DNA of 63,535 bases, filler included, from Perkinsus chesapeaki ATCC PRA-425 (Eukaryota > Protista > Perkinsozoa), in the NCBI GenBank assembly GCA_013115145.1. It is 15 parts of 15 records of this genome, joined end to end, with 100 filler letters (N's around TTAATTAATTAA, not from the genome) between each part and the next. Parts side by side here need not be neighbours in the genome. Positions count along the whole stretch, not along the records: positions 1 to 24,318 come from JAAPAO010000546.1; 14 more parts are not named here. The stretch is one strand, 5' to 3'. Positions 1-24,318 of this stretch are shown piece after piece. Every line of letters begins with the position of its first letter. The stretch's first letter is position 1. The translations under genes and the position numbers were made by a program. Under the pieces are notes generated by a model, which had not been told where the DNA came from, did no database searches, and was given only the letters and a program-made list of their open reading frames with translations.

Positions 1-3000
1 AATGTCGATGATCCTTCAGCCGTCCGTGTACGGTCGAGTGCAGGTCAAGAACTTGCACTACAGGTGGGGCAACAATGCTTTCACTATGACCCGCGAGATT
101 ACTCCTCTCCGTCAGATCCCCTTCGAGAATGCGTCCCGTCTCCCTGCCATTTTCGAGTGTCTGGATGGCTATAAGAGCCGTTCAGAGATATCTTCGTATG
201 GCATATCAGTGACCACCATGGAAGACGTTTTCCTCAATGTAAGTCAACTTTTTTGTGCCTTTAACAGACTCTCTCCGTTCAGGTAGCACGGCGCTCTCAT
301 GGCGATGATGAGAGCTTGTCTCGGCTCAAGAGCCGAACTTACACCAGCGATGAGAGAGAGGGTATGTACGACTTGTCGTTGAAGCCAAGTCCTTGGCAGC
401 AGTTTGTCGGTCTGTTGGTGCGACGTGCCACCTATGCCTGGCGAAACTGGTCCGGCACCATAGCTGCCCTGCTCATACCTACTCTTGTCATCCTCGTCCT
501 CATGGGTCTGCAGTATCTCGGTGTGACCGTATTTGATGCTCGAAGGCTGATGTTAGGGTGGGGTAAGGACACTCCGTATGAGTTGTATCCCTCCTATCAC
601 GTCATTGGTCGTTGGGACATTAGCCAGCCGGAGGTGGTGAAGGTGGAGAACGGCTGGGAGACACTATCGGACATAAGCGCGGCTCTTCCGCTGACGGAGA
701 AGGAAAGCAGCATCTGTTCAGAGTGGGAGCCTTATCTCATGCTGCCGTCTCAAGAGGTCAGTCAGAACCTCAATTTGTGTGCGGCGATTCTGAGGTTCTC
801 GGCATCCCTTATGTACGAGAGCACAGCATGGTTTGAGGTGACGGCCTCTGGTATCACTTCCCGGTCTGTCTTTGCCGACATGACCGCCCTCCATATGACA
901 CCGTTTGCCCTTGTTGGCAATGAGTTTATATCAGTTGTGAACTACCCCTTCCCACACACTGCCTATCAGGACAGCAAGTCCCTTGGAAATCTGGTATTGA
1001 CTCTAGCTGTTGGAGGCTACTACGCTATCGCCCTCACAGTAGTTGCTGGTAGTCTCCTCTCCTACGTGATGATGGAGAAGACCAGGGGGATTAAGGAGCA
1101 GCTTTTCGTGAGCGGCTGCGGGCCGTTGACCTACTGGGTGTCCTGCTGGTTCTTCGATTTCCTCCTCACCTTCATTGCAGTCTGCCCGACTTGGATACCT
1201 CTGGCGATCTTCGACATCGAGGCTTATCTGGACCCCGATAACATGGGTGTCATTTGGGTGCTTCTGATAGGCTTCTGTTTTGCCATGCCTTGCTTTAACT
1301 ATTTGGTGTCCATTCTAGCTCGGACCAACACCATTGCAACCTACATCCAAGTAGGCTCTGGTGTCGGAGCTGGTCTCATCGGTTCCTTCGTCGTCTCTAT
1401 CCTCTATCTGGGTGTTGTTGCCCCGGATATCGGTTTGGCTTTAATGTGGATTCTGCGAGTGGTTCCGGCCTTCCCAGTCGCCCAAGGACTGACGAGCATC
1501 TTCTACACCTATTTAGGCTTCTTGAACAGCCCCTCTGGTGAAGGTGTGCAGACGCATCCTTTTGACGCCCAGATTCTGAATACGTGCAGCGAGGTGCGAT
1601 TGAAGGGGATGGACAACAAGACGTATGATACCTGCCTGGGAGTGGCTGGTGATGATGTCATCGTGCTGTTCCTCTGTGGGGTGGTGTACTTTGGTCTTAC
1701 TATATTCATCGACTTTAGAATGAACGACAATAGGTGGAATACTAACCGTGATTTACCGGTACCACCTGAGAAGCGTGGTGTAGAGGATGAGAGGGTTATT
1801 GAAGAAAAGGAGAGAGTATCTAAGCTTGATGCTTCAACACAAATGATTTATTTTAAAGATCTTAAAAAAGTATATTATGAAGGGAAAAAGAATGAAGTGA
1901 TAATTATAATGGAAAACTATTATTAATATTAATTTTAGGTATGGGCAGTAAGAGGTATTAATTATGCATTAGCTGACGGTGGTGTATTTGGTCTACTTGG
2001 TGTTAATGGTGCTGGTAAAACAACTACCTTTAGGATGTTATGTGGTTTAATTAACCCTTCTGCCGGCAATATATCTCTTATTGGCAGACCTCTCCTCGGG
2101 AATGTCTATGAAGTAGGGAACTTCTCCATTGTGTTTCAGCAAGAAACGATCGGTCTGTTAGGTTCGGAAAAACATAGGGTACTGCCCACAGAACAGCCCC
2201 TTGCTGGAAGGCCTCACCACAGAGGAGCATCTAATATTGTAAATTTCCTCTGTAACTTGGTTTTTCAGAGGAGCCCTGCTCTAGGTACGCCCGAATCCGT
2301 GGGGTATCTTCGTCTGTGATCAAGGAGCACACTGCTGACCTCTTGCGTATCTTGCAGCTCGAGTAAGCCCTCGTGGTGGCTTGCTGTGGTATGTGCATTC
2401 GTCGTCTCAGGCGATATCGTCAAAAAATGGCGACTAGACTTTCCGGTGGTAACCAGCGAAAGCTCTGTGTAGGAATCGCCCTAGTCGGGCATCCCTCCTT
2501 GGTGTTCTTGGATGAGCCCACTACGGGTGTTGACCCTGATGCTCGGAGGTAGGGTTAATCTGAACAGCAGGCAGTTTGAACACAGTTGTTGTTTCAGACG
2601 CATTTGGGACGTGATACATAAGATAGCGCACGGGCGGTCGAAGTCGTCTGCCGTCGTTCTCACCACTCACAGCATGGAGGAAGCCGACGCCCTCTGCGAG
2701 ACGATGGTCATTCAGGTCAGTTCGCGCTCTCCACGGTTTCCTGCGATTTGTTTTTGCAGGTCGACGGACAGTTCCGGTGCATAGGGTCCTCGCAAGAGAT
2801 CAAGTCCGACTACGGCCAAGGATTCAAGCTCTGGATATCATTCACCGACAAGCCTCTCGATTCGACCACTGAACTCCTCCAGAATTTCTTAGCTCTCGAG
2901 GAGGCCATCAGAAGTGACCCGAGCATGAAGTTGTCGTTCAGTGATGAGAGGCTGGAAGTTTCCCTTGCCGGAATAGGTGAGTGGCTAGATGTGCTTCCTT

Positions 3001-3574
3001 GGTGGACTTCTCGCTCTCCGAGCGGACTCATTCTTCGTATTCCTGAAATGCTCCTCTCTTCTCCGACGAGGCCAATAGGTGCGTTTGCTCGGAGAAAGCG
3101 TTAGCGAATCGGTGAGCGTGGCTCTAGTGACAGCTATCACTTCCGCTTGCAATCTGAGTGGGCTTCTGATTCGGTTTTCGGGAGGCTGCTCGTTTGGGCT
3201 CGCCATATTAACGAGTGCCTTCAGGTATCACAGAGCCCCGTGTCGTTCATAGCATCATCAACACCGGTACACTGGACGAAGCTGCCCAATGCCGCTATTA
3301 CACTGCTTCGGCGCTGGCCACATCGGTGACTGGCGGGATGCTCCACACCCGGGCCCTCGAGTGGTTGAAGAAGACGATTTCAGAGGAATGCCGAAGCCTT
3401 GGGGAAGTCGGCGAATTCAGTCTGCCTCGGAGCATCAACCTCGGAGACGTTTTCTCCAAGCTGTCTAATCCCACGGTGAAGGAAGATCTGTCCTTTACCG
3501 ATTTTCAACTCTCGCAGACGACCCTTGAGCAGATTTTCAACAGGTTCGCTCAAGGCGAGTCATCTATACTATAA
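1..3574 (+). CDS. ABCA: ABCA-family transporter, copy 1 (5'-truncated by window; linker, TMD2, NBD2; multi-exon)
   Basis: TTMEDVFL motif after NBD1; TMD2 ORF 316-1926; 42-nt intron 1897-1938; Walker [10 protein letters not shown]; LSGGNQRKL; [10 protein letters not shown]; [13 protein letters not shown]; C-terminal SQTTLEQIF. Confidence 0.93.
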
Positions 3575-4569
3575 TAACCTTTGCATCTCTACAAGTTAAG
3601 TTAGCAGTATCTCCGGCTATCACTAAAGTGTTGTCATCGTGCCACTGTTTTTAACAACGTCGCCATTGGTGCTGCTGTAAGTTGCTTTTTTATTGTTTTT
3701 CGTCCATTGTTGTAACGATATAATCTAACGATTTCATAAGTGCCATCATCTGAGATTATCCTATTGTGTTGGGTTTGAAGTTGATGCTCGGCTGTGAGTG
3801 GTGTGGAGGCCGGCACTGCACTGTAGTAGTTGTTATCTGGTGCCACTAGGAGTGAGCTTTGGTCACTGGCTCGAACCACGCTAAGGAAATCGATTCCACG
3901 ATGGAATCAAGCTTGGTACTCGGCAGTAAGTTGCTGCCAAATGCCAGTGGTGCGACGCCAGTGGTGTCTCTTCTGGGGATAGGTCACGGCGATAACCGCG
4001 CGCCCGAAGAGGGTATGGTGCCCGTCTCGTTGTATTCGATGGACTCGGCGTCCCAAGCATATACCTACAGATAGGGGTTCGAGCTGATTCTGGCGACTAC
4101 GTAGCTTCGTTAGTGGAATGCTGCTTGATCATCCGGCGTCCTGGCGGAGCGGATTTTGTTAGATAGCTAAGCTTTGTCTCTGCGCCCCAGGCGTAGTTCG
4201 CATTTAGGGAGGTGCTTACTCGAGCTGGCTCCATCTAACCTTGTTGGGCGGCGTCACAGTGTCCGATACTTGTTCGGCTCTGTGCTGGGTGAAGATCGGC
4301 CGTGAAGGCTCGGCGGGCCTTCCGTATTTACTACCTACTTGTGGGTGATAACTTCGGCTGTCCACATTCTTCTGCCGTCTGTATCCGGTCGATGCCTCCT
4401 TCGTCATGGGTTGTCTGAATTTATAAATCGAAGAAATACGAATTATCCTATTTTGCTGCATCGGGCTGTACTATATGTTCTGCTGTATCACTTGAGCGCA
4501 CCGATGTTAGTGGTCTCTGAGGTTCCTTATTATGGATGGTCGTGCTCAGCTTTTACAGAGTACGTTTCA

Positions 4570-7500
4570 ATGGGTAGCGAAGATGCTGCTGCTTCGACGG
4601 TGGCGGCCACCAGACGCAAGCATCATAGTTTAATGTACACTCAGGTAGGAGTATGCCTCTGTTGGCCGCCGCATCTAACGCGTGTTAGGTTCGAGCTTTG
4701 TGTAAAAAAAACTTCATACTATCACGAAGGTCTAAGCTCACAGTGTGTTGTGAGATTCTTCTACCACTAATAGTAGCATTGGCTGCCTTCCTGATACCAC
4801 CCTTCGCCAATACTCAAGATAACCAGCTGCAAACGATCGTAAGTCTTGCCCGCTCTCCTTGCCATGTGTACCATTGCCTCTGTTGCTCAGCCCGCAGCCT
4901 CCTATCCTGTCACCGACGCTCACGGTGCATTCCTTAGGAGGCCCGGCTCTTTCTCATATGCTGCCGAGTTGAGGCGCTTTTATGACAGGTCTGGGCTGTC
5001 CCCTGTTATATCGTACTCCGACTTTTTCCGCCAGTCCAACCTTGCCGCTGTGCTCACGAGATGCTTCTGCAGTACTCTAGCCATCGGGCCATCAGGCTCC
5101 GATAGGGCTAAACAGTTCGCAGCCTACCTAACTGGTAGACTAGGCCGACTTACTGCTGGGGTGTCAGTGCCGGCCTGTGGAAGAAGTCCTATCCTTGATG
5201 TCGTTACGAACATAGTCAACCCTGCGGCTTACGTCACATCCTCCTCCTACGGTTCTGTTAACCAGCCTGAGTTGTGCGCTTTTATAAACCTCGATGAGGC
5301 CGACACGGTAACAGTGATGACGAACGCTACAGCGGGTCGTAATAGTCTCAGCGTCGACCTGAGCAGCTACACAAGTTTCTGGTATGCTGAGAATGGTGAT
5401 GTGCAGCACGGTGATCCCAACGACAACGGTTTAACCTTCTATACCGCCCTCAACTTCCCACCGCTTATGTCCCTCTGGCAGGAATATCGTACTGGAACGG
5501 AGCTGCCAATTGCTGCACTCTACCCTATGCCTTATACCGGCTATGAGCAGAGGAATTCTGGTAGCACACTGAAGCTCCTTGGTGGCACTATAGGCGCCCT
5601 CTTATTCACGTTCATGGCCTTCTCTGTCACAAGAAAGCTCATATCAGAACGCCGCGGCCGGCTCCGTGAAGGTAGTGAACTTGTGGTCCTTGTCCACTTG
5701 CCCATTTATTGTTTCGTAGGTATGCGTATTATGGGTCTTCATGACCTTCCCTATAACTTATCATGGTACTTATGGTACTTAGCCTTCTACCTCCTATTCG
5801 CCATCGTAGTGGCGTTACTATCATTAGCCATTCTTCAGCCTTTGAGCTCCCTTTGGCTTTTACTACTCACCTTTTTATACTTCTACGCTTCAATGGCGTT
5901 CGTCTTTTCTCTTTCCACTCTGTTCGAGTACCCCAATTCTGGTTCGGCCCTATCTGCTGTGATCTACTACATCCTCGCATTCGTCCTCATCGCCCTCAAT
6001 AGGGAGGCCGAGAAGTGGGCAGTTTGCCTGCTGCCACAGTGTGCCTTCACCCTCGTTGTGCAGAACCTTGGCCAGCAGGTTTTTCTCGGTTTATCGACCC
6101 CATCGGCAACGCTGCGCTACAGCAACTTCAGTCTGATTCAAGGCTTGATAATGCTGGTGGTTGATATCGTACTGTGGACGATGGTTTATCTCTATTTGGA
6201 CCAAGTGGTGCCTCATGAATATCGTGCAAATAGAAAGCTGCATTTTCTATTCACTCGATCCTTCTGGCGGGAAATGGGAGGGACACAAGTTGATAAACGG
6301 CCGAACGAAGAGGAGCAGGCCTTGACGGCTGGACGATCCGAGGAGGAAGAGAGCGCGCATACTGAACAATTTGGTATTCAGGAAGTCACCGGCGAACGCC
6401 AGAAGGAGCTCCAGCGGGAGCAGGAGACCGTCGACATTCATGGGCTCAAAGTAGCCTTGTGATCTCGAGCTTTTTGGTGATGCGGTTTCCAGGTGCACTT
6501 CAAAAACGTGCGCGCCGTTGATGGTTTAGATTTGACCATGTACAGAGATGAGCTATTCGTATTATTAGGACATAATGGTGCTGGTAAATCTACAACTATT
6601 AATGTACTCAGTGGAATGATAAAACCAACTAGTGGGGTAAGACACAACAGCTGCACTCAATCCCATGGCAACTCCCTTTTCAGAAAGTGTTTGTATTCGG
6701 AAATGAGGTCCCCACTGAGATGCCGGTAATCAGAAGGAGTATGGGAATCTGCCCGCAGCATGACGTCCTTTGGGATGACTTGACTGTTTCGGAGCACTTT
6801 GACATATTCGCGAGTCTTCGAGGATTGAAAAGAGACGCCAAAGCTCTGGAGTTCGCCACAGAGATTGAACTCGGGCATAAGTTTGAATCTCGTGTTAAGA
6901 CTCTATCAGGTATTAATTATAATATATTAAATGTTGAGTGTTTTATTATTAGGTGGAATGAAAAGGAAATTATCAGTTGGTTTGGCATTCGTTGGTGATT
7001 CTAAATTGGTTATATTAGATGAACCAAGTAGCGGTATGGATCCGAGTGCTCGTCGACGAATGTGGGATTTTTTGAGATCAAAACGTGAAGGAAGAATCCT
7101 TTGCATTACAACACATTATATGGATGAAGCTGATGTTTTAGCAGATAGAGTTGGTATAATGGAAAATGGTAAACTTATGGCATATGGAACAACAAACTTC
7201 CTAAAACATCAATTTGGTGAGATAATGATTTATTGATCAATTAATATATTTTATTAAACAGGTTCTGGTTACACACTCAGCATCGCTAAAAGAGATTCCA
7301 CTGTTCCCGATGAACCACTTGTTGATGTTATCAGGAATAATGTCGATGATCCTTCAGCCGTCCGTGTACGGTCGAGTGCAGGTCAAGAACTTGCACTACA
7401 GGTGGGGCAACGCATCTTCTTCTCGCCTCTCGGAACTTGCTGCTCAGCTTCCCTACGACTGCGTCTCGAAGTTCCCAAGAATATTCGATTGCCTTGACGA

Positions 7501-10500
7501 GCGCAAAGCATCGAATGAGATAACTGCCTATGGCATAGCAGTGACCAGCATGGAAGATGTCTTCCTGAATGTGAGCTCAGCAGGGGCGTCTGTCAAGTAG
7601 CCTGGAATCCGAATACAGGGGAAGCATCCCGACGTGTAGCTATAGTCTTCTTCCACTGCGTATATAGAGTATCATGGCCTAGTTTCGTGGCGCTGGAGTG
7701 GTATGAGATATAAGTTGTTTCCGGTTTGATTGGATCCTTCTATCATCGTTTTAACTTCAGGTGGCTCATAGAGTTACTGGTGGAGCCGAGCCTGACCTCG
7801 GTGCCCGTGCAGCCATCGAGTCCATGGATGAAGCCGCCACCTACGATATCGACCTCAAGCCGACCTTCTCACAACAGTTACACGGTCTTATGAAGAGAAG
7901 GCTTATCTATGCAATTCGGAACTGGGTGGGGACTCTGACGACACTTCTGATACCGATGATTGTCCTCCTGGTCCTCATGGGCTTTCAGACAGCTGCAGTG
8001 AACATTTCCGATGCGGTGCCCATTACTCTCAACGCCTTGTCTAACCCTTACTCAGCGGGGCCCAGCTCCCACATAATAGGTCAATGGAACATGGCAAGCC
8101 CCTTGTCTGTTAGGGTCACCAAAGGAGGTCGGGTGTTGCCCAGTATTGACGCCTCAGCGCCGTTGACTCAGACGGAGGCTGCTGCGTGTGGTGATTGGGA
8201 CCCAGTCACTATGCTACCTTTCCGATCGGACGTTAGGCCAAATGCGACCATCTCCAACGCCTTCTGCGCGGCGATTCTCAGATTTTCGGCGTCCCTTCTC
8301 GATGAGAAGACGGCATGGTTCGACGTCACAGCGCTCGATATCACTTCTAGGGTCCTCTTTGCCGACATGACCGCCCTCCACACGGTGCCACTTGCCCTTC
8401 TTGGTGATCAAAGCCTATCAGTGGTGAACCACCCTTTCCCACATACTGCTTATCAGAAGTCATCATCCCTGGTTAACTTCGCCATCTCATTTGCTGTCGG
8501 TGGCTACTACGCCATCGCTCTCGCTGTTGTTGCATCTACCCTTCTGTCTTACATTATGATGGAGAAGACAACGCGCATTAAAGAGCAGCTGTACGTCAGT
8601 GGATGCGGCATTCTGCCTTACTGGATAGCGTGCTGGTTATTTGACTTCTTCATTATACTCGTTGCCGTCTGCCTTACATTCGTTCCACTTCAAGTATACA
8701 ACATTCAGACCTATCTTGAGAATCCGAGACAACAGGCCACTTGGGCGTTGCTCATCGGCTTCTGTTTCGCCGTCCCCCCATTTAACTACTTGATAAGTCT
8801 GTTTGCCCGTACAAATACCATCGCCAATTACGTACGGATCGGTTCGTCTATTCTTGGAGGCCTCATCGGTTCGTTCGCCGTATCCATTCTGTACTACGCT
8901 GTGGTGTCCCCTGTGGCGGGACTGGTCCTGATGTGGATACTAAGAGTCTTCCCAACCTACTCGGTGGCCCAGGGATTGACCAGTATCTTCTTCACAAACA
9001 TAGGCTTCTTTTCAACTCCGGCGGGAGAGGATGTAACTCCAGCGCCGTTCGACTCGCAGATTCTCAGCACCTGTACTACGGTTCGTTTGTACGGGCTGAA
9101 CGAGGAGATCTACGACACATGCCTGGCAGTGGCGGGTGACGACGTGATTATGCTGTTTGTGTACGGAGTTGTTTACTTTGGTCTTACCCTCTTCATCGAT
9201 CTAAAGTTGTGCAGTAGCAAGTGGAATACTAACCGTGATTTACCGGTACCACCTGAGAAGCGTGGTGTAGAGGATGAGAGGGTTATTGAAGAAAAGGAGA
9301 GAGTATCTAAGCTTGATGCTTCAACACAAATGATTTATTTTAAAGATCTTAAAAAAGTATATTATGAAGGGAAAAAGAATGAAGTGATAATTATAATGGA
9401 AAACTATTATTAATATTAATTTTAGGTATGGGCAGTGAGAGGTATTAATTATGCATTAGCTGACGGTGGTGTATTTGGTCTACTTGGTGTTAATGGTGCT
9501 GGTAAAACAACTACCTTTAGAATGTTATGTGGTTTAATTAACCCTTCTGCCGGCAATATATCTCTTATTGGCAGACCTTTAGCCGGCAACGTATACGAGG
9601 TGATCCCCCCCTCTCCCGTCCTTGTCATGACACACTTCTGCATTCCCTCTCAGATTCGGAAATCGGTGGGATATTGCCCACAAGACAATCCTCTTTTACA
9701 GGGTTTAACCACTAAAGATCATCTTTACCTGTAACGCATCTCTGTCCTCTCCCGTTCGATTTGCCAGCGCAGGTATGCGAGAATTCGCGGAGTGCCGCCG
9801 AATGAAATTCCGCAGCACGTTGATGATCTGGTGAGAATTCTAAGGCTCGAGTAAGTGACGGTGTTATGGTTGGAGGTATCACCCTTGCAGGCGTTATGTT
9901 GACAAGGAAGCCGTGAAGTTGTCGGGAGGAAACCAGAGAAAGCTATGCGTTGGTATGGCTCTAGTTGGGCATCCTCCGGTGGTGTTCCTGGACGAGCCGA
10001 CTACTGGTGTGGATCCAGAAGCTAGAAGGTACGTTGAGCTGCAAAAACAGCTCTCCTTGGTCACCTGGTTAAGCTCTAATCTCACTAAACTTGAAGGCGC
10101 CCGTGACCTTCTGTTCGATAGTATTTTCGTTTTTACCGCCGAGTTGTTTCGGGTACTTCTATTGTTAGGCGCATTTGGGATGTTATCCATAAGATAGCTC
10201 ATGACCGATGTAAAACATCGGCAGTTATTCTCACCACTCACAGCATGGAGGAGGCCGATGCTCTATGCGAAACGATGGTGATTCAGGTGAGATTTGGTCA
10301 GTCCTCTCGGCGCACACCGCCTTCCCCAGGTCGACGGACAGTTCCGTTGTATCGGAACCTCCCAACAAATCAAGTCGGACTACGGTCGAGGTTATCATCT
10401 CTGGATGCACTTCCGCTCTCCCTCTACTCTGGAGACGAATAGGATCACCGCCGAGCTTCTTGGCTCTGACAAGGCGTCGACCATCGGAGGTTATGCGATG

Positions 10501-10929
10501 TTCGCCGACGGTGAGCTTGTTGCGAGGCTCAGTAGACTAGGTAAGCCGCTCGAGAGTATATGCTTCATCATACTATCAGGTATCACTAACTCTCGTTTGG
10601 TTGACAGCGTTCTATCGGCTGGAACTCTGGACGATAACTCGGTTCGTACCTTCAACCAGGGTGCGTTGACCTCTGCTGTAAGCTGTGCCTTGCAGCACCT
10701 CAAGGCTCTTCAATGGCTTAAACTGAACATCTCCGAGCACGCCCAATCCTTGGAAGAAATCGGCGAATTTGCCCTACCTCGCGATGTCGATTTGGGCGAT
10801 ATCTTTGGGAAGCTGACTAGTGACCAAGCTAAAGAGGAGCTGGAGATGGAAGACTTCCAGCTCTCACAGACAACACTTGAACAAATATTTAATATGTTCG
10901 CCCACGGAGGGGAACAATCTTCTCAGTGA
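4570..10929 (+). CDS. ABCA: ABCA-family full transporter, copy 2 (TMD1-NBD1-TMD2-NBD2; many short introns)
   Basis: N-terminal [11 protein letters not shown]...EILLP typical of ABCA; [10 protein letters not shown]; [10 protein letters not shown]; [10 protein letters not shown]; TTHYMDEAD; second [19 protein letters not shown]; SQTTLEQIF end. Exon boundaries read by eye. Confidence 0.93.
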
Positions 10930-13497: not shown

Positions 13498-14272
13498 TCA
13501 ACAGACTGTCTTCGTTAAAGTATGTTGCTGTTATTTCCAATCTTAATGGTCTGATGTGATCGCCGCAAGGCGCTCTTCCGTAAGTGTGCCGAATATCAAG
13601 TTCCGTGCGGCGTCGCTCCATGGATTATCATGTTGGTCCGAGGGTTTTTGTCCTTCGTACTATCTGCTCTATTTTCATGGTTCTGTTGTAAGGAACCCCA
13701 CCTGTTTCAAGGCAGCCTCCCTAGTTTTGCGTTGTAGCCAGTATCGTGTCAAGTCCTCGATTCCCCAAGGGACTCGTTCGGCTGAATCCGTACTGAATTC
13801 GTACTGGGACGTGAAGTGCAAGAATTATCATCTTTCGACTCGAACGTTTCGAGGCGAACGTTACTGAAGCTACGCTCAGCGTAGCCAGACTGACAGGAAA
13901 CATTTTTCCGTTGAACTCTATCGCTTGACGCACGCCTCAGTGAAGCCCCCGAGGGAGCTGGGTACTTTCCAATGGAAAGTTTCCATTGAGCACTGTCCTG
14001 TTGGCTAGGGCAGGGCGATCTTCACTTGCATCTCAAAATATACTTATGTATATATTGAAGTGTTATCGGAGATCGAGGCAGCATGAATTACAGTAGCCTA
14101 CTGTCAGTAGGCCGGGTTGCGCTTTCTTATGTTAGACTTGGCACATAATCTGGGATCCGGAATCTCAGATATCCTGCCGGCTTGTTTTTCCCATCAAGAG
14201 CCAATCAAGTCGAGTTGGGATCGTAGTCTTTCTGTCACCCTCTCACCTCATAGCCAGTCGTTGGCTCTTCCC

Positions 14273-15765
14273 ATGGCTCTCTTTGCCCTCCTCACTATCA
14301 TATCAGTCACCTTGGCCTGGAGGGCTCCGGTAGTAGATCTGGCCTGCTTCGGTGACAAGCCTCATGATGACTGTGATGGAGCTGAGGGCGCCTTACTCCT
14401 GGCTGCTTCCAAGACTGGAGGAGGTGCTTTCATCCTTCAAGGGCACGGCGTAGACGATAGCTTGATCGACAACGTATTCCCAAGTGCCCGTCGATTGTTC
14501 ACCGCAGTCGACCAGCTCGAGAAAGAACGTTTGGCTATCACCGGCGGTGGCCTCACGCGTGGTTACGTTCTCCTTGGTGGGGAGAGCGGATCAGACCGCC
14601 AGGAGATGAAAGAGGCCTTCTCGTACGGCTATGATTGGCACGCTGAGCAGAGCCATTTCGAGAACAAACTGCAAGGGCCCAACGTATGGCCGAGTGGTAT
14701 CAATACTGAAGACAAACGCATCCTGAACGAGTGGTTCGAGCACGCAACACGCATCGGTTTGGCACTGTCAGCGGCCTTCGCGAGGGCAACAGGTGCGGAC
14801 ATCACCGTTCTGCTGCTGTGGCGTAGGCTTGCTCCTTTACAGGCCAGGAGGCTCTGGCAAGCAGTTGCGGACCAGATGGTGCTTCGATAAGCCTACAACG
14901 AGTTTTTCGATACTTCGCCGTTGAAGGGAACGACAGATCTGGTAAGATCTAACCGCGAGATCTAATCTATCGTAGTAGGTGTGCTAGCAGCTTATGGTCA
15001 ACAATCCTTTGTTGCAAGAGCAAGTCTTTATGGAACAGATTTCTTCGGATATTCTACGAGTATCCGAGGCAAGAGTACTACTCTTGCCGAAGCCTGTGCC
15101 TGTATCGAAAGTTTTGGTTCAAAACGGACCGTGCTAGCCGAGAATTACGCTCGAAGAGTAGCGATTCGTAGTTCAGAAATTGCTTGGGGGGTTACTAGCC
15201 AATCTTCTCATGATCGTGCGCGGTCATATCGCCGCAAACGGAGTATCTTGCGGGCTTAGGTGAGAAAAGAATTGGCAGTTCCCCTCACACAGATTGGGGA
15301 TTCATAACAATCGTTCTCCAGCAAGAAGGTATTGACGGTCTCGAGGTAGCCCGAGACCGATAAAGTTCGGTTATCTTCATTCTCCCACAGGTTCAGGATC
15401 CAGAAACCGGATACTATTATCCTCTACCGAACGATAGGCCGTCTCGGATAGTGGTGAATGTCGGAGACTTCGCATCCATCATGACTGGGGGAAAGCTATA
15501 CTCGCCAGTACATCGGGTAAAAAGTGTTCCGAGTTACCAACTGCTCACATTGACCGCTTCGTAGGTGATGCCGCCACTGAACGCAGCAGAGAGGCTATCT
15601 CTTGTTCACTTCTACTACCCAAACTATAACACAACTCTTGAAGGCTTTCTTAATACCGATGCAGCCAAGAGGTATCCGCTCGACGTAATGGGGTTGCCCG
15701 TATGCCAGCTTTCAGGACAAGTCTTTTGTCTGACCAAAAGGAAGGCGGTGCCGCTGAGTGGATGA
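14273..15765 (+). CDS. 2-oxoglutarate/Fe(II) oxygenase, IPNS/DIOX type, multi-exon
   Basis: APVVDL, GHGV, RGY, KEAF, GPNVWP in exon 1; HTDWG (HxD) about 15285; VNVGD..SPVHRV (distal His); ERLSLVHF. Confidence 0.88.
15045..15088. other. Paired single-base-centred hairpins in a long intron (old excision-footprint type)
   Basis: Degenerate 11-1-11 (9/11) centred A15056 abutting perfect GGCAAGAGTA-c-TACTCTTGCC. Confidence 0.6.
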
Positions 15766-17185
15766 ACGACGAAGATGCCGAAACAATGACTTTTGGAGAC
15801 TTCATCTCTGCCAAATGGGGGCAAGTTTATCGTCCGGTCTCTTCACCTGCTGGCGTCGATGATGATGAGGAGCTATGATTTCATGTTTCGTATGATCGAA
15901 TGTATTGAGTCATTCCATGTGTAGAATGTTCTCGCGACTCCACGAGCGTTTCCCCATTCTCAAGGGAAAATAAATGTTCTGGGCGGCATTAGTGGGTAAT
16001 CCTGACACCAACCCAAGTTTGCCACAATTACGACTTCTACAGTAACTTGTCACACAGGTTATCACTCATTCTGCACGAGTGGCATAGTATCGTACACATG
16101 CACGAGTCGTTCATCCGTTTTCCGTTCACGAGGTTTCTGTCATCACGCCAATTGTTACCATGGATGGCTGGTCGGTGGAGGTGGTGATGTCAGTGGCCGC
16201 AGCTGAGCATTGAGTACCTGAGATAGAAAGGGATGGCAGCAACACAGTGACGCGGCTCTGCCTCGAGGAACGTATGAAAAGACTTCCGCCCATAATAGCA
16301 TATTCTCCCATACGCTGCGTATTAATCCGAGCCAATTCCAGGCTAGGGCTCCTAGCATAATTCATATGTTTCACACCAATTCTCCGAGACTGGAACCATA
16401 TACACTCGGCAAGGTAATAGTTTGAGATCCAAATGATACACGAAGAGTTTTGCAACGAACTATTAGGTTGTAATTAGTAAAGGAATACAATACCTTTATA
16501 TACCAAATACGACATCTGCCTTTTAGCACGATATGACCTACACCAGCACCAAGCGTCTCCGAAACACAGTGACCCCTTCGCAATGGCCCCGGTTGGAGAA
16601 TGTACACGCCAGCCCATCAGGTGCCGGCGTTTCGAGTTACCAGCTGCGTGCATTCATCACTTCATAAATGGTAAAGATATTCCTTCCTTGATTATACTAT
16701 TCCACTAACTCAACTCTACGATACCTCCTCGACAACCAAACATTCAACATTGTTGAGGGAAGACTCACGCGGCAGTTCACTGTAATTGAACCAGATAGAC
16801 CACCCACCTAAGGATGTTATCTTTCGTAGCTTTATCCACGAGTTGGCTCTATGGGCAATAATCACGTATACTATACGCCACGATATAACATGGAACTGGA
16901 TTTCCACACCAACCCCAATCGGGCCTTGTGGTGCAAGTAGATGGAGTCGTCTATCATACTATGATCATAGATGTTCGATGCATCCCTAATTATGCCTTGC
17001 TTTTTGAAGCAGATAATGGGTCGAGGGGATCTAGTCATCCGTGTTAGCTTAGAGACGCGAACGGGCAACTTGAACGCGCGAACATGGCAAATTGTGCGGC
17101 CTTTGTAGATGCTTCATAGGTGATAATATCGCTAGAAACTCAGTAGTAGGGTACTAATAGCGCTCCAGACCAAGTTCTGTGAAAA

Positions 17186-18145: not shown

Positions 18146-18167
18146 ATTAGAAGTTCTAAGTTAGAAC
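18146..18167. other. Near-perfect 22-bp excision-footprint motif (target CTTAGAAC)
   Basis: aTTAGAA GTTCTAAG TTAGAAC; one mismatch at t1. Confidence 0.6.
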
Positions 18168-19166
18168 CTTGTGCTTGTGACGACAGAGACTAGGTTCGGC
18201 GGCTATTCCCGTTTGAGACCGTGGCCGGAATACGAAGTAGTCGGTCACCGAGCAGGCCATACTCTACCGTCGTACCCACCAAATTCGACATCAGTGACAT
18301 AGAGAGGAAGGCTCTTAATGGTGATGATATACGCTCTGATATAGCTTGTATCGTTGTAACATGGGCAATGGTGAGGAGCCCATATAACAGATATGAATGA
18401 CAGATTAGAACTACAGTACAGTCTAATTCAACTTCACCAAAGTGTCACAAGCGACCGACTCCTGACGAACGAAACTTGCCATTTGGCAAGGGACCGACCA
18501 CTACAAGTTCACTGTTATTATCGTTACCCTTTCTACACTCATTGACTGAACGTGTTATCTGTCGAACCGATCACAAGGATGATTCTTGCAAATATCCCTG
18601 GGATATTACCCAGGCTCTGGGTTCGAGGAATGTGAAGTGAAAAGGAAGAATGTATTGGAATGAATCTACCTCCAGGAGGTAACTTCCTTACTTTCGAAGG
18701 CGATGAGGAAACTAACCGCGTGGCGAAAGTTTTACTAGTCAGTGGTCAGGTCGAAACACAAGGCGGCGGAAGACTCTGGTTCCATTTATTCAGTTCGAAA
18801 GTTGCTCAATAACGCAATACTTCTTACTGCTTTGCTTCAATAGCTCGGTTCCGAGTGGTTCCACGAAAGTTGTGTTACACTCAGTAAAAGACAACACGAG
18901 AGAATGTTCCCGGAGGAGTTATTCCTCTCCCTATTTCTAAGTCATTCTCCGGGCTCATCTGTCTCCCCACAACTATGTGCTGAGATTCCTATTATCCAGC
19001 TGGTGGAATCGATCTATGACTCATCAGTAGTATAAGTTCTCCAAGCTTTTTACGTTATCGAATCCATTACCTACGAGCCACTTCTATCTTTAGAAGGAGA
19101 CGAGTCTTAAGTTATATTGTGATAATCCGCTATATCAATTTACTATCAAAATTCATCCGATTCGAT

Positions 19167-21790
19167 ACCAGGCTGAGGCTCCTAGCATAATCTATAGGTA
19201 TCGACTCTCTAGATGACACAGATCACCGGATGAAAGCTTTTCATCCAGTGATTTGTCATTTTATTGAAAAGTCAAATCCACACCGTTCAACATGTGGGGT
19301 TAATGGTTCCGGTTCAGAGAAGACTAGAATCACGTACAATCCTAACGGTAAGGTAATAGTTTGAGATCCAAATGATACACGAAGAGTTTTGCACGCAGTA
19401 ACGAACTATTAGGTTGTAATTAGTAAAGGAATACAACAACTTTATATACCAGATACGGCATCTGCCTTTTAGCACGATATGACCTAAACCAGCACCAAGC
19501 GTCTCCGAAACACAGTGAATCCTCCGCATTGGCCCTGGTTGGAGAATGTACACGCCAGCCCATCAGGTGCCGGGGTTTTGAGTTACCGGCTGCGTGCATT
19601 CATCGCTTCATAGATGATAAATATATTTCTTCCTTGATTATACTATTCCACTAACTCAACTCTACGCTACCTTCTCGACAGAAGAAACATTCAAGTTTGT
19701 TGAGGGAAGACTCACGCGGCAGTTCACTGTGATCAAACCAGACAGACCATCCACCCAAGGATGTTATCTTTCGTAGTTTCATCCACACGTTAGCTCTATG
19801 GGCAATAATCACGTATACTATACGCCACGATATGACATGGAACTGGATTTCCACACCAACCCCAATCGGGTCTTGTGGTGCAAGCCTTCGAATCTACCGC
19901 CAGTGCTTGAGTATATTCAGCAATGCAATCATGTCTAGTCTGAGGTTAGGTGAGGCAGAGAAGGCCGCAGACGGCCTACCCCAGAAAGACGAAAACTTAC
20001 AGAAACGAATATCACGCGAAAGGTTAGTGATAGTGGATGGCAGTGGATGACTGGATGGGGTCGTCTATCAAAAGATTATCATAGATGCTCGACGCATGCC
20101 GAATTATGCCGTGATTTTTGAAGCAGATAATGGGTCGAACTTCGACACAATTATCTTGGACCCTTCGACCGTCGATCTACTTATGCATTTTAGCTTGGAG
20201 ACGCGAACGGAGTATTTGAACACGTATTCATGGTGGGATTTGCAGCCTTTGCAGCGTAGATGCTTCTCAGGTGATAATATCGCGGCAAACTCAGTAGTAG
20301 GGCACTAGTAGCACTCCGAACCAAGTTTTGTGAACAAATGGTTCCCACCTTCAACGCGTTCATCATATGCCTTATCGGGAGTTATGGGCTGGAGGAGAGA
20401 GTATCTGGGCAGGCGAGCGGGTACGATGCTGCTCGCATGATAGAATGGCCGAAACTGTTTCAGGAAAAGTACAGCACAAGTGGGAATGCATGGCCGCGTG
20501 GCCAACATTAAAGAAAGCAGGTTGTTTGTCGCTCCTCAAGTTCATGTGCTACGCAGGTTCCTTTTCCAAGCCCGACGGGATTTGCAGGAAGAAGTCATTA
20601 TTTGGCGGCCCTACCAACTGCACTTGCCCTGCTGGGGAAATACTCTATTGTACGAGGCCTGAGGTATGCTCAATTTGATACGCAATGACTAGTACATAAC
20701 GCGGTTATTTTCAGTTGCTCCGTTATATTTATCCGCGCTGTGTCTGTGGAATACCATGTTCGGAAAAGACGACCTGTCCGCTCCCGTCCGGGGGAATCGG
20801 AAAGCCTTACTGTCACCGCCATAAGCTCTGTATGCTCGGTTGCGGAAAGGTATCAGGCTACTTTAGCTCCGTAGAGCGAGTGTCATCCAGGTTTCTTTCT
20901 GTCAGGGGTATGTATGTCCAGGAAATATGAAATGCTTCAGAGATTGGACTGCAGACTGCTTGTATGACAACAAATAGCATGGGATACTCTGCGATCGGGA
21001 TTCCCGATCAAGTCATTCTAATATGACACATCAGCTCCCTCTCGGAGACTGGCTCGTATGCGGTATGCCTCAAAGACATCCATCCACAGTGAATCGATAT
21101 CATAGTGAATCATTCACTATTACACGCACGCACTAGTTGTGCTTTTCCAATCGCTCATTCAAGCCTCGTGTTGTTCGTGAGCCCAACGGGGGATAAAAAT
21201 ATTACGTTCGATATCCACACCAAAGAATCGATAGTATCGAGTTTCGATATTGTTCCGAGTTATATCAGTAGGATTTGACATGCCGCATGTCACATGCGTA
21301 AAACCGAGGTGCGAGTGACCTGGTGCATCCCGACGCTGTTGTTGTGCGTTTGCACAGATTTACCCCACCGTCAACGGATGGCGGCTCCGCGACCTGCGTG
21401 AGCTTCAGCCTCCGCCGGCCTGTCAGTTCCTATGTTTCTCTATGGCCGCCTTAGCACGCCAACTCGCCGGTCCTGCCATCATGCGTGGGCCGACTCAACC
21501 CCCCTCCCCCCACTGACCGAGGCTTTGGTAGAGTGCGATCCGTTTCGAATCATCGTAGTAGGTCGCGCTGGACAAGCAGCAGAACGCGTCGGTCGTGTAG
21601 GCGCCTACGTTGCGCCTACATCGCGCCTCTGATGCAGCTTGTATCGCATTTGTAACATTGGTAATGTTGTGAAGGGCCAACACAACAGATAGAAATATCA
21701 GATTAGAATTACAGTACAGTCAAATTTAACCCCCCAAAGGTGTCACAGGCGACTGACTGAGCGGCGTCCCACCTGACGAGCAAGACTTAT
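19167..21790 (+). repeat. Segmental duplication unit B
   Basis: Colinear with 16340-18480, with extra insertions. Confidence 0.85.
20338..20977 (+). CDS. Cys-rich secreted-type protein, copy B (intron-2 GT donor lost; GC donor or pseudogene)
   Basis: Same 5-exon layout as copy A; AGCA|GTATG in A is AGCAGGTTG in B. Confidence 0.6.
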
Positions 21791-23270: not shown

Positions 23271-24197
23271 TATACACCGACCTCAACTCACTGTAATATA
23301 TTTAAAGTGACTTACCAAGAGCGTCTGAACCATTATACAAATTGCGGTCCTGTTGCGTGCTGGGCGATTGGAATGGAACACACGGTATTCATACGTCCCC
23401 CTTATTCCCCAATCTTAAAAATGTCACAATGCTCAATAGCTTACAGGCATCTTCAGGTTCGTCCGTAGGAGACTGCTCGTCGCCGAAAAGAAAGACTCTT
23501 TGGTTGAGGATGAGAGCCTCTTAAAGAAGCTACAAGCCTCCAGTGTTCTTGAGGAACCAAGAAAGATGAAGTTACTGCTTTCCACCTGTGCTCTTAAGGA
23601 CTCATCTCTTCAGCCAGGAGGTTCATCCTGGACTCCGTTAACTCCTCGACCTTCACACTGTCACTTGTGAGAGTTCTCGTGGAGTATAGGAAGTTGTGGC
23701 AGACGGAAGGGTAGGAAAATCGGCTAAGAGGAGAACGTAATTCAGTGTACAGTGATCCAAGATGAGCGCTAGGATGGGAGAGACTCGATACATGCCAGAG
23801 TCGAAAGTTGAGGAAGGATGACTAATCATGCTATGAGAACCGCCCGGAGCTGAGTTGTAATAGTCAAGCTTGGCTTGCTTCAAACCGAAAGGCGCAAACG
23901 TCGCGCAACGGGGTTGAAGCGAGGCTGGCAAGCGCTCATAGATTTCACCGCAACGATCACTGACAACCGTTTCATACCCAAGCATTCTTTATCCACAACA
24001 GTGCTTTATCGGACCTCGGCTCATTTCTTATACACGGACTAACAGACACGTACTTCCTTGCACTTGTGATGAGCGACAGTAGCACTATCTTTTCAAGGGC
24101 GAGCCCTTCTGCTAATTTAGACTCTCTTTGTAGAGATTGTCCCAGATATGGTATCTCATCCCACAATAATTGTCCCATTCTCTGTGTTGTGCATAGC

Positions 24198-24269
24198 GTG
24201 ACGCTAGTCACTAGCGTCACAAAATTGCATTACAAGGCACTAGCGGCTAGTGCCTTGTAATGCAATTTT
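24198..24269. other. Abutting perfect hairpins 11-1-11 and 24-1-24 sharing the 8-mer CGCTAGTG
   Basis: GTGACGCTAGT-c-ACTAGCGTCAC then AAAATTGCATTACAAGGCACTAGC-g-GCTAGTGCCTTGTAATGCAATTTT. Confidence 0.9.
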
Positions 24270-24318
24270 ATGAACGTAATAAGTTAAGTTCTCCTCTCAA
24301 GATTGTATTTTATTGGGT

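Follow-up and report, generated by a model that had tools for sequence, protein, structure and literature searches.

Paired odd-centred palindromes in a Perkinsus chesapeaki LTR: a probable hAT excision footprint and a related class of 8-bp scars

The LTR copy and its paired palindromes

The window analysed here is the whole of contig C3000, which makes up the first 24,318 positions of the 63,535-nucleotide stretch presented above; it comes from the 41.7-Mb assembly of Perkinsus chesapeaki ATCC PRA-425, which has 3544 contigs. Between positions 316 and 10929 the window carries three tandem open reading frames of ~540 aa with ABC2_membrane_3 domains, which have the look of tandem genes for ABCA-type transporters. 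Their best matches are Perkinsus proteins with 56-66% identity, the 550-aa frame being closest to proteins of Perkinsus olseni and P. marinus (66%). Searches for the fungal and oomycete markers Zn_clus and elicitin returned no match, a blank of little weight since the control searches were blank as well. At the other end of the window, positions 24130-24318 (plus strand) align with other copies of a dispersed repeat of ~165 nt, and this copy is cut by the contig end. The repeat is an LTR, present in about 12 copies in the assembly. It starts with TGTAG and ends, in the other copies, with CTACA; three copies run on into a common internal region with a weak gag-like ORF, and one copy follows a purine run. 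Another copy of the same family (L025:1662-1692, on C2821) has a perfect 15-1-15 palindrome in place of its initial bases. Upstream of the window's LTR, the segment 21627-23844 is paralogous to, or the second haplotype of, C1709:13187-16061, with 96% identity that falls to 84% and with indels of 17 and 74 nt; C1709 also has a copy of this LTR family. The comparison of the window with the 96% identical part of C1709 revealed no palindromic indels and was uninformative.

The window's LTR copy differs from ten other copies (83-100% identical in the alignments) in 43 extra bases that it alone carries. In the ten, a single CGCTAGTG lies between ...GCGTGA and CCTTGTAATG..., and the empty site, GAC-GCTAGTG-CC, joins ...GTGA to CCTTG.... 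A preliminary description of this DNA had proposed looking for an allele or paralogue in which a single octamer follows ...GTGA, and all ten read ...GTGA-CGCTAGTG-CCTTGTAATG...; they are paralogues, not alleles. In the window the same place is occupied by two perfect palindromes. The first, at 24198-24220, is GTGACGCTAGT-C-ACTAGCGTCAC, an 11-1-11 structure that is 100% complementary and centred on C 24209. The second, at 24221-24269, directly abuts it and is a 24-1-24 palindrome centred on G 24245, whose arms lengthen to 28 nt at 96%. The two hairpins and their complementing centres, as described earlier, were recovered both by reading the sequence and with a repeat finder: each centre is the complement of the eighth base that is absent from the adjoining TSD copy.

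Seen in this way, the 8-bp TSD is kept on both sides of the joint. The left copy, at 24202-24208 (plus strand), consists of bases 1-7, CGCTAGT, base 8 being absent, and the right copy, at 24246-24252 (plus strand), consists of bases 2-8, GCTAGTG; both assignments agree with the paralogues that have a single CGCTAGTG and with the model described below. Between the copies lie two P tracts on the plus strand. The left one, 24209-24220, comprises 12 nt that are the reverse complement of GTGACGCTAGTG and opens with C 24209, which complements the target base that would have adjoined the element. The right one, 24221-24245, comprises the leading 25 nt of the right flank in reverse complement and closes with G 24245, which complements target base 1. 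At the junction 24220|24221 there is neither microhomology nor any untemplated base.

Chance cannot account for these paired palindromes. A perfect arm of at least 11 nt is expected ~0.006 times in 24 kb, and shuffles of the window produced no palindrome with a 1-nt centre and arms of at least 10 nt. The 72-mer at 24198-24269 occurs once in the 41.7-Mb assembly and is thus not itself a dispersed repeat family, an alternative that the preliminary description had raised, although its setting is repetitive: the site lies inside a dispersed LTR, whose other copies share the sequence of the right arm and of the flanks on both sides, and what sets this copy apart is the 43-nt palindromic insert alone. 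A terminator, a REP-like sequence or another functional hairpin was discarded, since of 11 LTR copies only one has the insert, whose template lies wholly in its own flanks. The location in an LTR also suggested self-priming of strong-stop DNA by reverse transcriptase. A minus-strand fold-back derived by hand gives C at the right-hand centre, where G is observed, and this route would leave the identical scar type outside LTRs unexplained.

The scar lies 49 nt from the contig end and in repeated sequence, the kind of place where an assembly or library artefact (for instance, chimeric inverted reads) has to be considered. The end of the contig, however, is explained by the repeated LTR: the last 55 nt of the window are also the first of contig C3339, a k-mer overlap at a repeat that is the mark of de Bruijn graph branching, and the break is not due to the palindrome. 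As neither palindrome is as long as this 55-nt overlap, all their k-mers have to be present in reads. Members of the same scar class are found mid-contig in many contigs and also in an independent P. olseni assembly, and the class has a decay spectrum and a target preference (see below), all of which speaks against an artefact and makes this explanation hardly credible.

The hairpin model and its alternatives

We consider it very probable that the paired palindromes are the excision footprint of a cut-and-paste transposon of the hAT superfamily, cut out of the retrotransposon LTR. The element would have inserted in the LTR at CGCTAGTG, with duplication of 8 bp. On excision, the transposase would leave a covalently closed hairpin on each flank, and a hairpin join offset by 1 nt would give each tip the complement of the target base adjoining the element. 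Host enzymes would then nick the hairpins far from their tips, 12 nt away on the left and 25 nt away on the right, and the unfolded self-complementary tails would be joined end to end, with no trimming, no microhomology and no added bases. If the offset has the polarity of Hermes, both nicks would be on the 5'-ended strand. We found no allele or copy with an element still at this exact position, and we therefore infer, rather than observe, the insertion at the CGCTAGTG site.

To put this in explicit form, the model takes the empty site, duplicates the octamer, forms flank hairpins with a 1-nt offset, nicks the 5'-ended strand 12 and 25 nt from the joins and abuts the products. Its output is identical to 24130-24318 at 189/189 positions. 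The earlier proposal that the flank hairpins were opened 12 and 25 nt from the tip and joined untrimmed thus regenerates the sequence base for base. A model in which the other strand is nicked swaps the two centres and fails, and so does a model in which the hairpins have no offset. In Hermes, the strand that carries the 5' end of the element is reportedly nicked 1 nt into the flank; an offset of this kind is what the model needs, and it explains the odd palindrome centres. A route with the offset in the opposite polarity and the nicks on the 3'-ended strand, the 5' tails being filled in and ligated blunt, could also have operated here. Both combinations yield the same sequence, so the strand assignment rests on published hAT chemistry and not on this sequence. 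Mre11-Rad50 with Sae2/CtIP cleaves the 5'-ended strand at blocked or hairpin ends. Nicks on that strand 8-33 nt from the closed end are of the kind that this complex makes, and it is a candidate for the hairpin opener. Counting against the hAT-footprint reading, we know of no simple route by which two long 3' tails are joined end to end without microhomology.

A minimal cover of the window's LTR copy by empty-site sequence, computed with a script, has four segments, and its breaks fall exactly at the points that the hairpin model predicts: forward to 24208, inverted over 24209-24220, inverted over 24221-24245 and forward from 24246. All inserted bases are therefore locally templated, as they would be if no transposon had been involved and a double-strand break or replication error had been repaired by fold-back priming or serial template switching, with inverted copying of nearby sequence. 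Short-range switches are described as a source of inverted local copies in other genomes (PMC7954356). Here, however, the cover takes two inverted segments that are separate and in swapped order; an exhaustive search for a cover of the window's LTR copy with a single inverted segment found no solution, so one template-switch event cannot make the sequence. Moreover, the switch points are without microhomology, and fold-back priming, which depends on a loop, leaves a spacer where here there is a 1-nt centre. Nor would template switching fit a class of scars that is exclusively 8 bp, with a fixed polarity of the 1-nt offset and a hAT-like target preference. In view of these points, a transposon-free origin appears very unlikely.

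Scars of the same class in the sampled genome

We scanned ~116 kb of non-redundant assembly sequence, a sample biased towards repeats, for related structures. Among perfect palindromes with arms of at least 9 nt, 28 had a 1-nt centre and one had no centre base. In the window, 31 palindromes with a 1-nt centre and arms of at least 6 nt were observed against a shuffle mean of 6.7, and 11 with arms of at least 8 nt against a mean of 0.45, which corresponds to an enrichment of ~5- to 25-fold; palindromes with no centre base or a 2-nt centre were at chance level there. Many of the centres are exactly 7 nt apart and form a 22-mer that can be written t1-7 + rc(t1-8) + t2-8 (TSD, inverted TSD, TSD). 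At k=8 this pattern has 44 perfect matches in the ~116 kb. The analogous pattern has no match in the same sequence at k=7 or at k=9-13 and one at k=6, in a GC repeat, and control patterns of equal information content, with mirror polarity or without the offset, have no match each in the sampled sequence. The 22-mer is the product predicted by the hairpin model when both nicks are at least 8 nt from the tips and the tails anneal over the duplicated target.

When mismatches were allowed, the k=8 pattern was found in the ~116 kb 32 times with one mismatch (0.02 expected by chance), 21 times with two (0.36 expected) and 48 times with three (4.3 expected). About 100 decayed scars thus lie beside the 44 perfect ones, and the mismatch distribution is an age spectrum. 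From these mismatch counts the sampled sequence carries more than one scar per kb; as a range, the density in the sampled parts is about one 8-bp scar per 1-2.5 kb.

A general scan of the sample returned 48 annealed scars and seven long unannealed ones. The arm pairs of the latter run from 5+8 through 9+6, 7+9, 16+6, 14+9 and 11+24 (24198-24269) to 9+32 (C1709). The scar at 24198-24269 is the second-longest example in the sample. The longest one, at L045:2000-2043 (C1709 ~6555-6598), has the TSD CCTCAACC, a left arm of 9 nt, a right arm of 32 nt and one base that is unexplained. Classical short footprints are near chance level in the sampled sequence, so opening far from the tip is the rule in this genome. 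The earlier suggestion of such opening is reinforced by the dominant scar class, which needs nicks at least 8 nt from both tips. Under the hAT-footprint reading, the usual outcome would differ from that at 24198-24269: the two tails, complementary over the 8-bp duplication, would anneal to give the stereotyped 22-bp scar, and the scar at 24198-24269 would represent the rarer, unannealed outcome.

The window contains several further members of the class. The pattern scan located canonical scars at 13965-13986 (a 22-mer with TSD CTTTCCAT), 14090-14111 (TSD ACAGTAGG) and 21277-21298 (TSD GACATGCG), and the mismatch scan added scars with one mismatch at 18146-18167, probably an older one, and at 18667-18688. 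A perfect 10-1-10 palindrome at 15068-15088, from the palindrome scan, may be a one-sided long P tract whose other flank was trimmed. Scars are few in the coding part, 316-10929, compared with the 12-24 kb part of the window. An identical 6-1-6 palindrome with identical flanks occurs at 16871 and 19818, 2.9 kb apart, and indicates an internal duplication.

Elsewhere in the sample, a suspected '4-bp overlap' class (L010, L019) turned out to consist of canonical 8-bp scars. Two abutting pairs of odd palindromes, at L033:410-466 (C2857) and L034:1386-1444 (C2941), have arms of 9+20 and 9+22, with overlaps of 3 and 5 nt. The flanks deduced for them have 4 bp in common (TCAT and TAGT), not 8, and the simple 8-bp model fails for them; nested or successive events, or a different element, may lie behind them.

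Scars of the canonical type are also present in P. olseni. A 4166-nt contig from this species (JABANM010022815.1, assembly GCA_013115895.1; L056) has four of them, with 1-2 mismatches. All four lie at 2644-3206, in a 0.9-kb intergenic part where ~0.013 are expected by chance and which is flanked by the genes for an ABC transporter and an anoctamin. Of the palindromes on this contig, eight are odd-centred and none is even. An artefact confined to one assembly is therefore not the source of the scars, which, judged from these sequences, appear to be a trait of the genus.

hAT elements, target preference and known hairpin systems

A profile search of the assembly gave at least 11 matches to the hAT dimerisation domain (PF05699) over the Pfam cut-off, with open frames of up to 532 aa, among them ORFs of 521-530 aa, and several hAT lineages are probably present. 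A 612-bp non-autonomous hAT at C2941:11931-12542 (L034:1259-1870), with the TIR CAGGGGCGGCT (CAGGGG) and the 8-bp TSD CATATATG, is a deletion derivative of the hAT on C616. This 612-bp element is interrupted by the 9+22 palindrome pair mentioned above. It is the only intact-looking hAT insertion in the ~116 kb, which has more than 100 scars, a scarcity that counts against the hAT-footprint reading.

The target logo obtained from 55 TSDs is symmetric, with G/T/T at positions 1-3 and A/A/C at positions 6-8; T2 and A7 reach 43% each, and G1 and C8 44% each. Ac-family hAT elements prefer nTnnnnAn targets (bioRxiv 10.1101/2022.09.16.508221), and the logo of the class would match this preference, in a weak form. 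The best-characterised hAT ORF, on C616, looks Buster/ZMYM1-like, whereas the logo is Ac-like. The CGCTAGTG target itself has neither T2 nor A7 and fits the Buster-family preference nnnTAnnn, although this is a single site only. Buster-type targeting was rejected for the class as a whole: it would suit the CGCTAGTG site and the type of the C616 element, but TA is found at positions 4-5 in only 5 of the 55 TSDs.

The shortage of resident hAT insertions relative to the number of scars leaves room for another superfamily that combines 8-bp TSDs with flank hairpins, such as a Mutator-like element (MULE), or for an undescribed or domesticated hairpin-forming transposase. MULEs do form flank hairpins and can make 8-bp TSDs (PMC5499845). 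Their TSDs, however, are 8-10 bp long and typically 9-10, while the class described here is limited to 8 bp, 9- and 10-bp cases being absent, and in yeast Muta1 mostly excises precisely (PMC5499845). The logo of the target sites is in keeping with hAT, and the domain search, which covered hAT domains, recovered hAT transposase genes. Taken together, an origin from a superfamily other than hAT seems improbable, and we keep to the hAT-footprint reading in what follows.

Palindromic additions at opened hairpins are familiar from V(D)J coding joints, made by RAG and Artemis:DNA-PKcs, where flank hairpins are likewise opened off-centre. RAG hairpins have no 1-nt offset and give even palindromes, and Artemis opens them 1-2 nt from the tip; the no-offset model fails at our site, and opening in this genome is usually at least 8 nt from the tip. 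Footprints of a natural element have been studied in the fungus Ascobolus immersus, in work that to our knowledge included no genome-wide census. This element, Ascot-1, is like the present case in being natural, Ds-like and resident in a microbe, and its diverse footprints were read as hairpins plus P nucleotides (Colot et al. 1998, as cited in PMC5499845). Hermes/hobo-type hAT chemistry, as relayed in bioRxiv 10.1101/2022.09.16.508221 from Zhou et al. 2004, shares the 8-bp TSD, the flanking-DNA hairpins and the nTnnnnAn preference, while the polarity of the offset is assumed here by analogy.

The closest likeness is to the footprints of Ac/Ds in S. cerevisiae, Arabidopsis and Candida albicans, in which both TSD copies are kept and the P tracts have as their centre the complement of the base adjoining the element (PMC5873905). 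In S. cerevisiae, arms of at least 3 nt were found in 47% of footprints, with a maximum of 20 nt, and microhomology in 88-89% of joins (PMC5873905); the account of Ac/Ds footprints in that paper refers to Lazarow 2012, Yu 2004 and Huefner 2011. In comparison, arms here reach 24 nt (24198-24269) and 32 nt (C1709), the dominant product anneals on the whole 8-bp TSD, the events are natural and fixed in the genome instead of induced, and the host is a perkinsozoan alveolate. The mechanism is thus already known in kind, and the earlier reading of long P tracts from hairpins opened far from the tip is supported with this qualification. New here are arms as long as 24 and 32 nt, the predominance of a single TSD-annealed product, the lineage of the host and the density of fixed scars. 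We found no report of such scars in the literature on Perkinsus transposons, palindromes or footprints that we covered, which was incomplete and leaves a prior description possible; the density in the sampled sequence looks unreported.

On its own, the scar at 24198-24269 is an extreme case of modest novelty and a clear instance, from nature, of hairpins opened 12 and 25 nt from the tip. Its main value lies in exposing a possible genome-wide scar class, since it led to more than 100 sister scars in ~116 kb. On balance we lean towards the view that Perkinsus-type genomes are saturated with fixed hAT scars, about one per 1-2.5 kb of non-coding DNA and nearly all of one stereotyped form with a 14-bp addition (TSD, inverted TSD, TSD). 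If so, there would be tens of thousands of scars per genome, and the scar type would be a sizeable source of small insertions. Hairpin ends would almost never be opened at the tip; the nicks would lie 8 nt or more from it, as far as 33 nt or beyond, and joining would follow by annealing on the duplicated target. The genome would be a natural archive of hairpin-opening positions and would have had an unusually high cut-and-paste turnover.

Genome sequence rarely allows transposon scars to be recognised; here they are unmistakable and can be counted. A genome-wide density of this order would point to intense past hAT mobility in a lineage of shellfish parasites whose transposons are little studied, and would give annotators and population geneticists a specific 14-bp insertion signature. 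It would also supply thousands of natural data points, from a non-model eukaryote, on how hairpin-capped breaks are opened and joined, a question usually approached only by engineered assays in yeast, plants or lymphocytes.

Finally, the repair genes proposed for survey in the preliminary description were recovered in part. The Ku match, on C189, is weak (28 bits, with in-frame stops that may be introns), and the several family-A polymerase loci are ambiguous, as they could encode Pol theta or organellar enzymes. On C245 there is a DRMBL domain of the SNM1/Artemis family, and an absence of Artemis is accordingly not supported.
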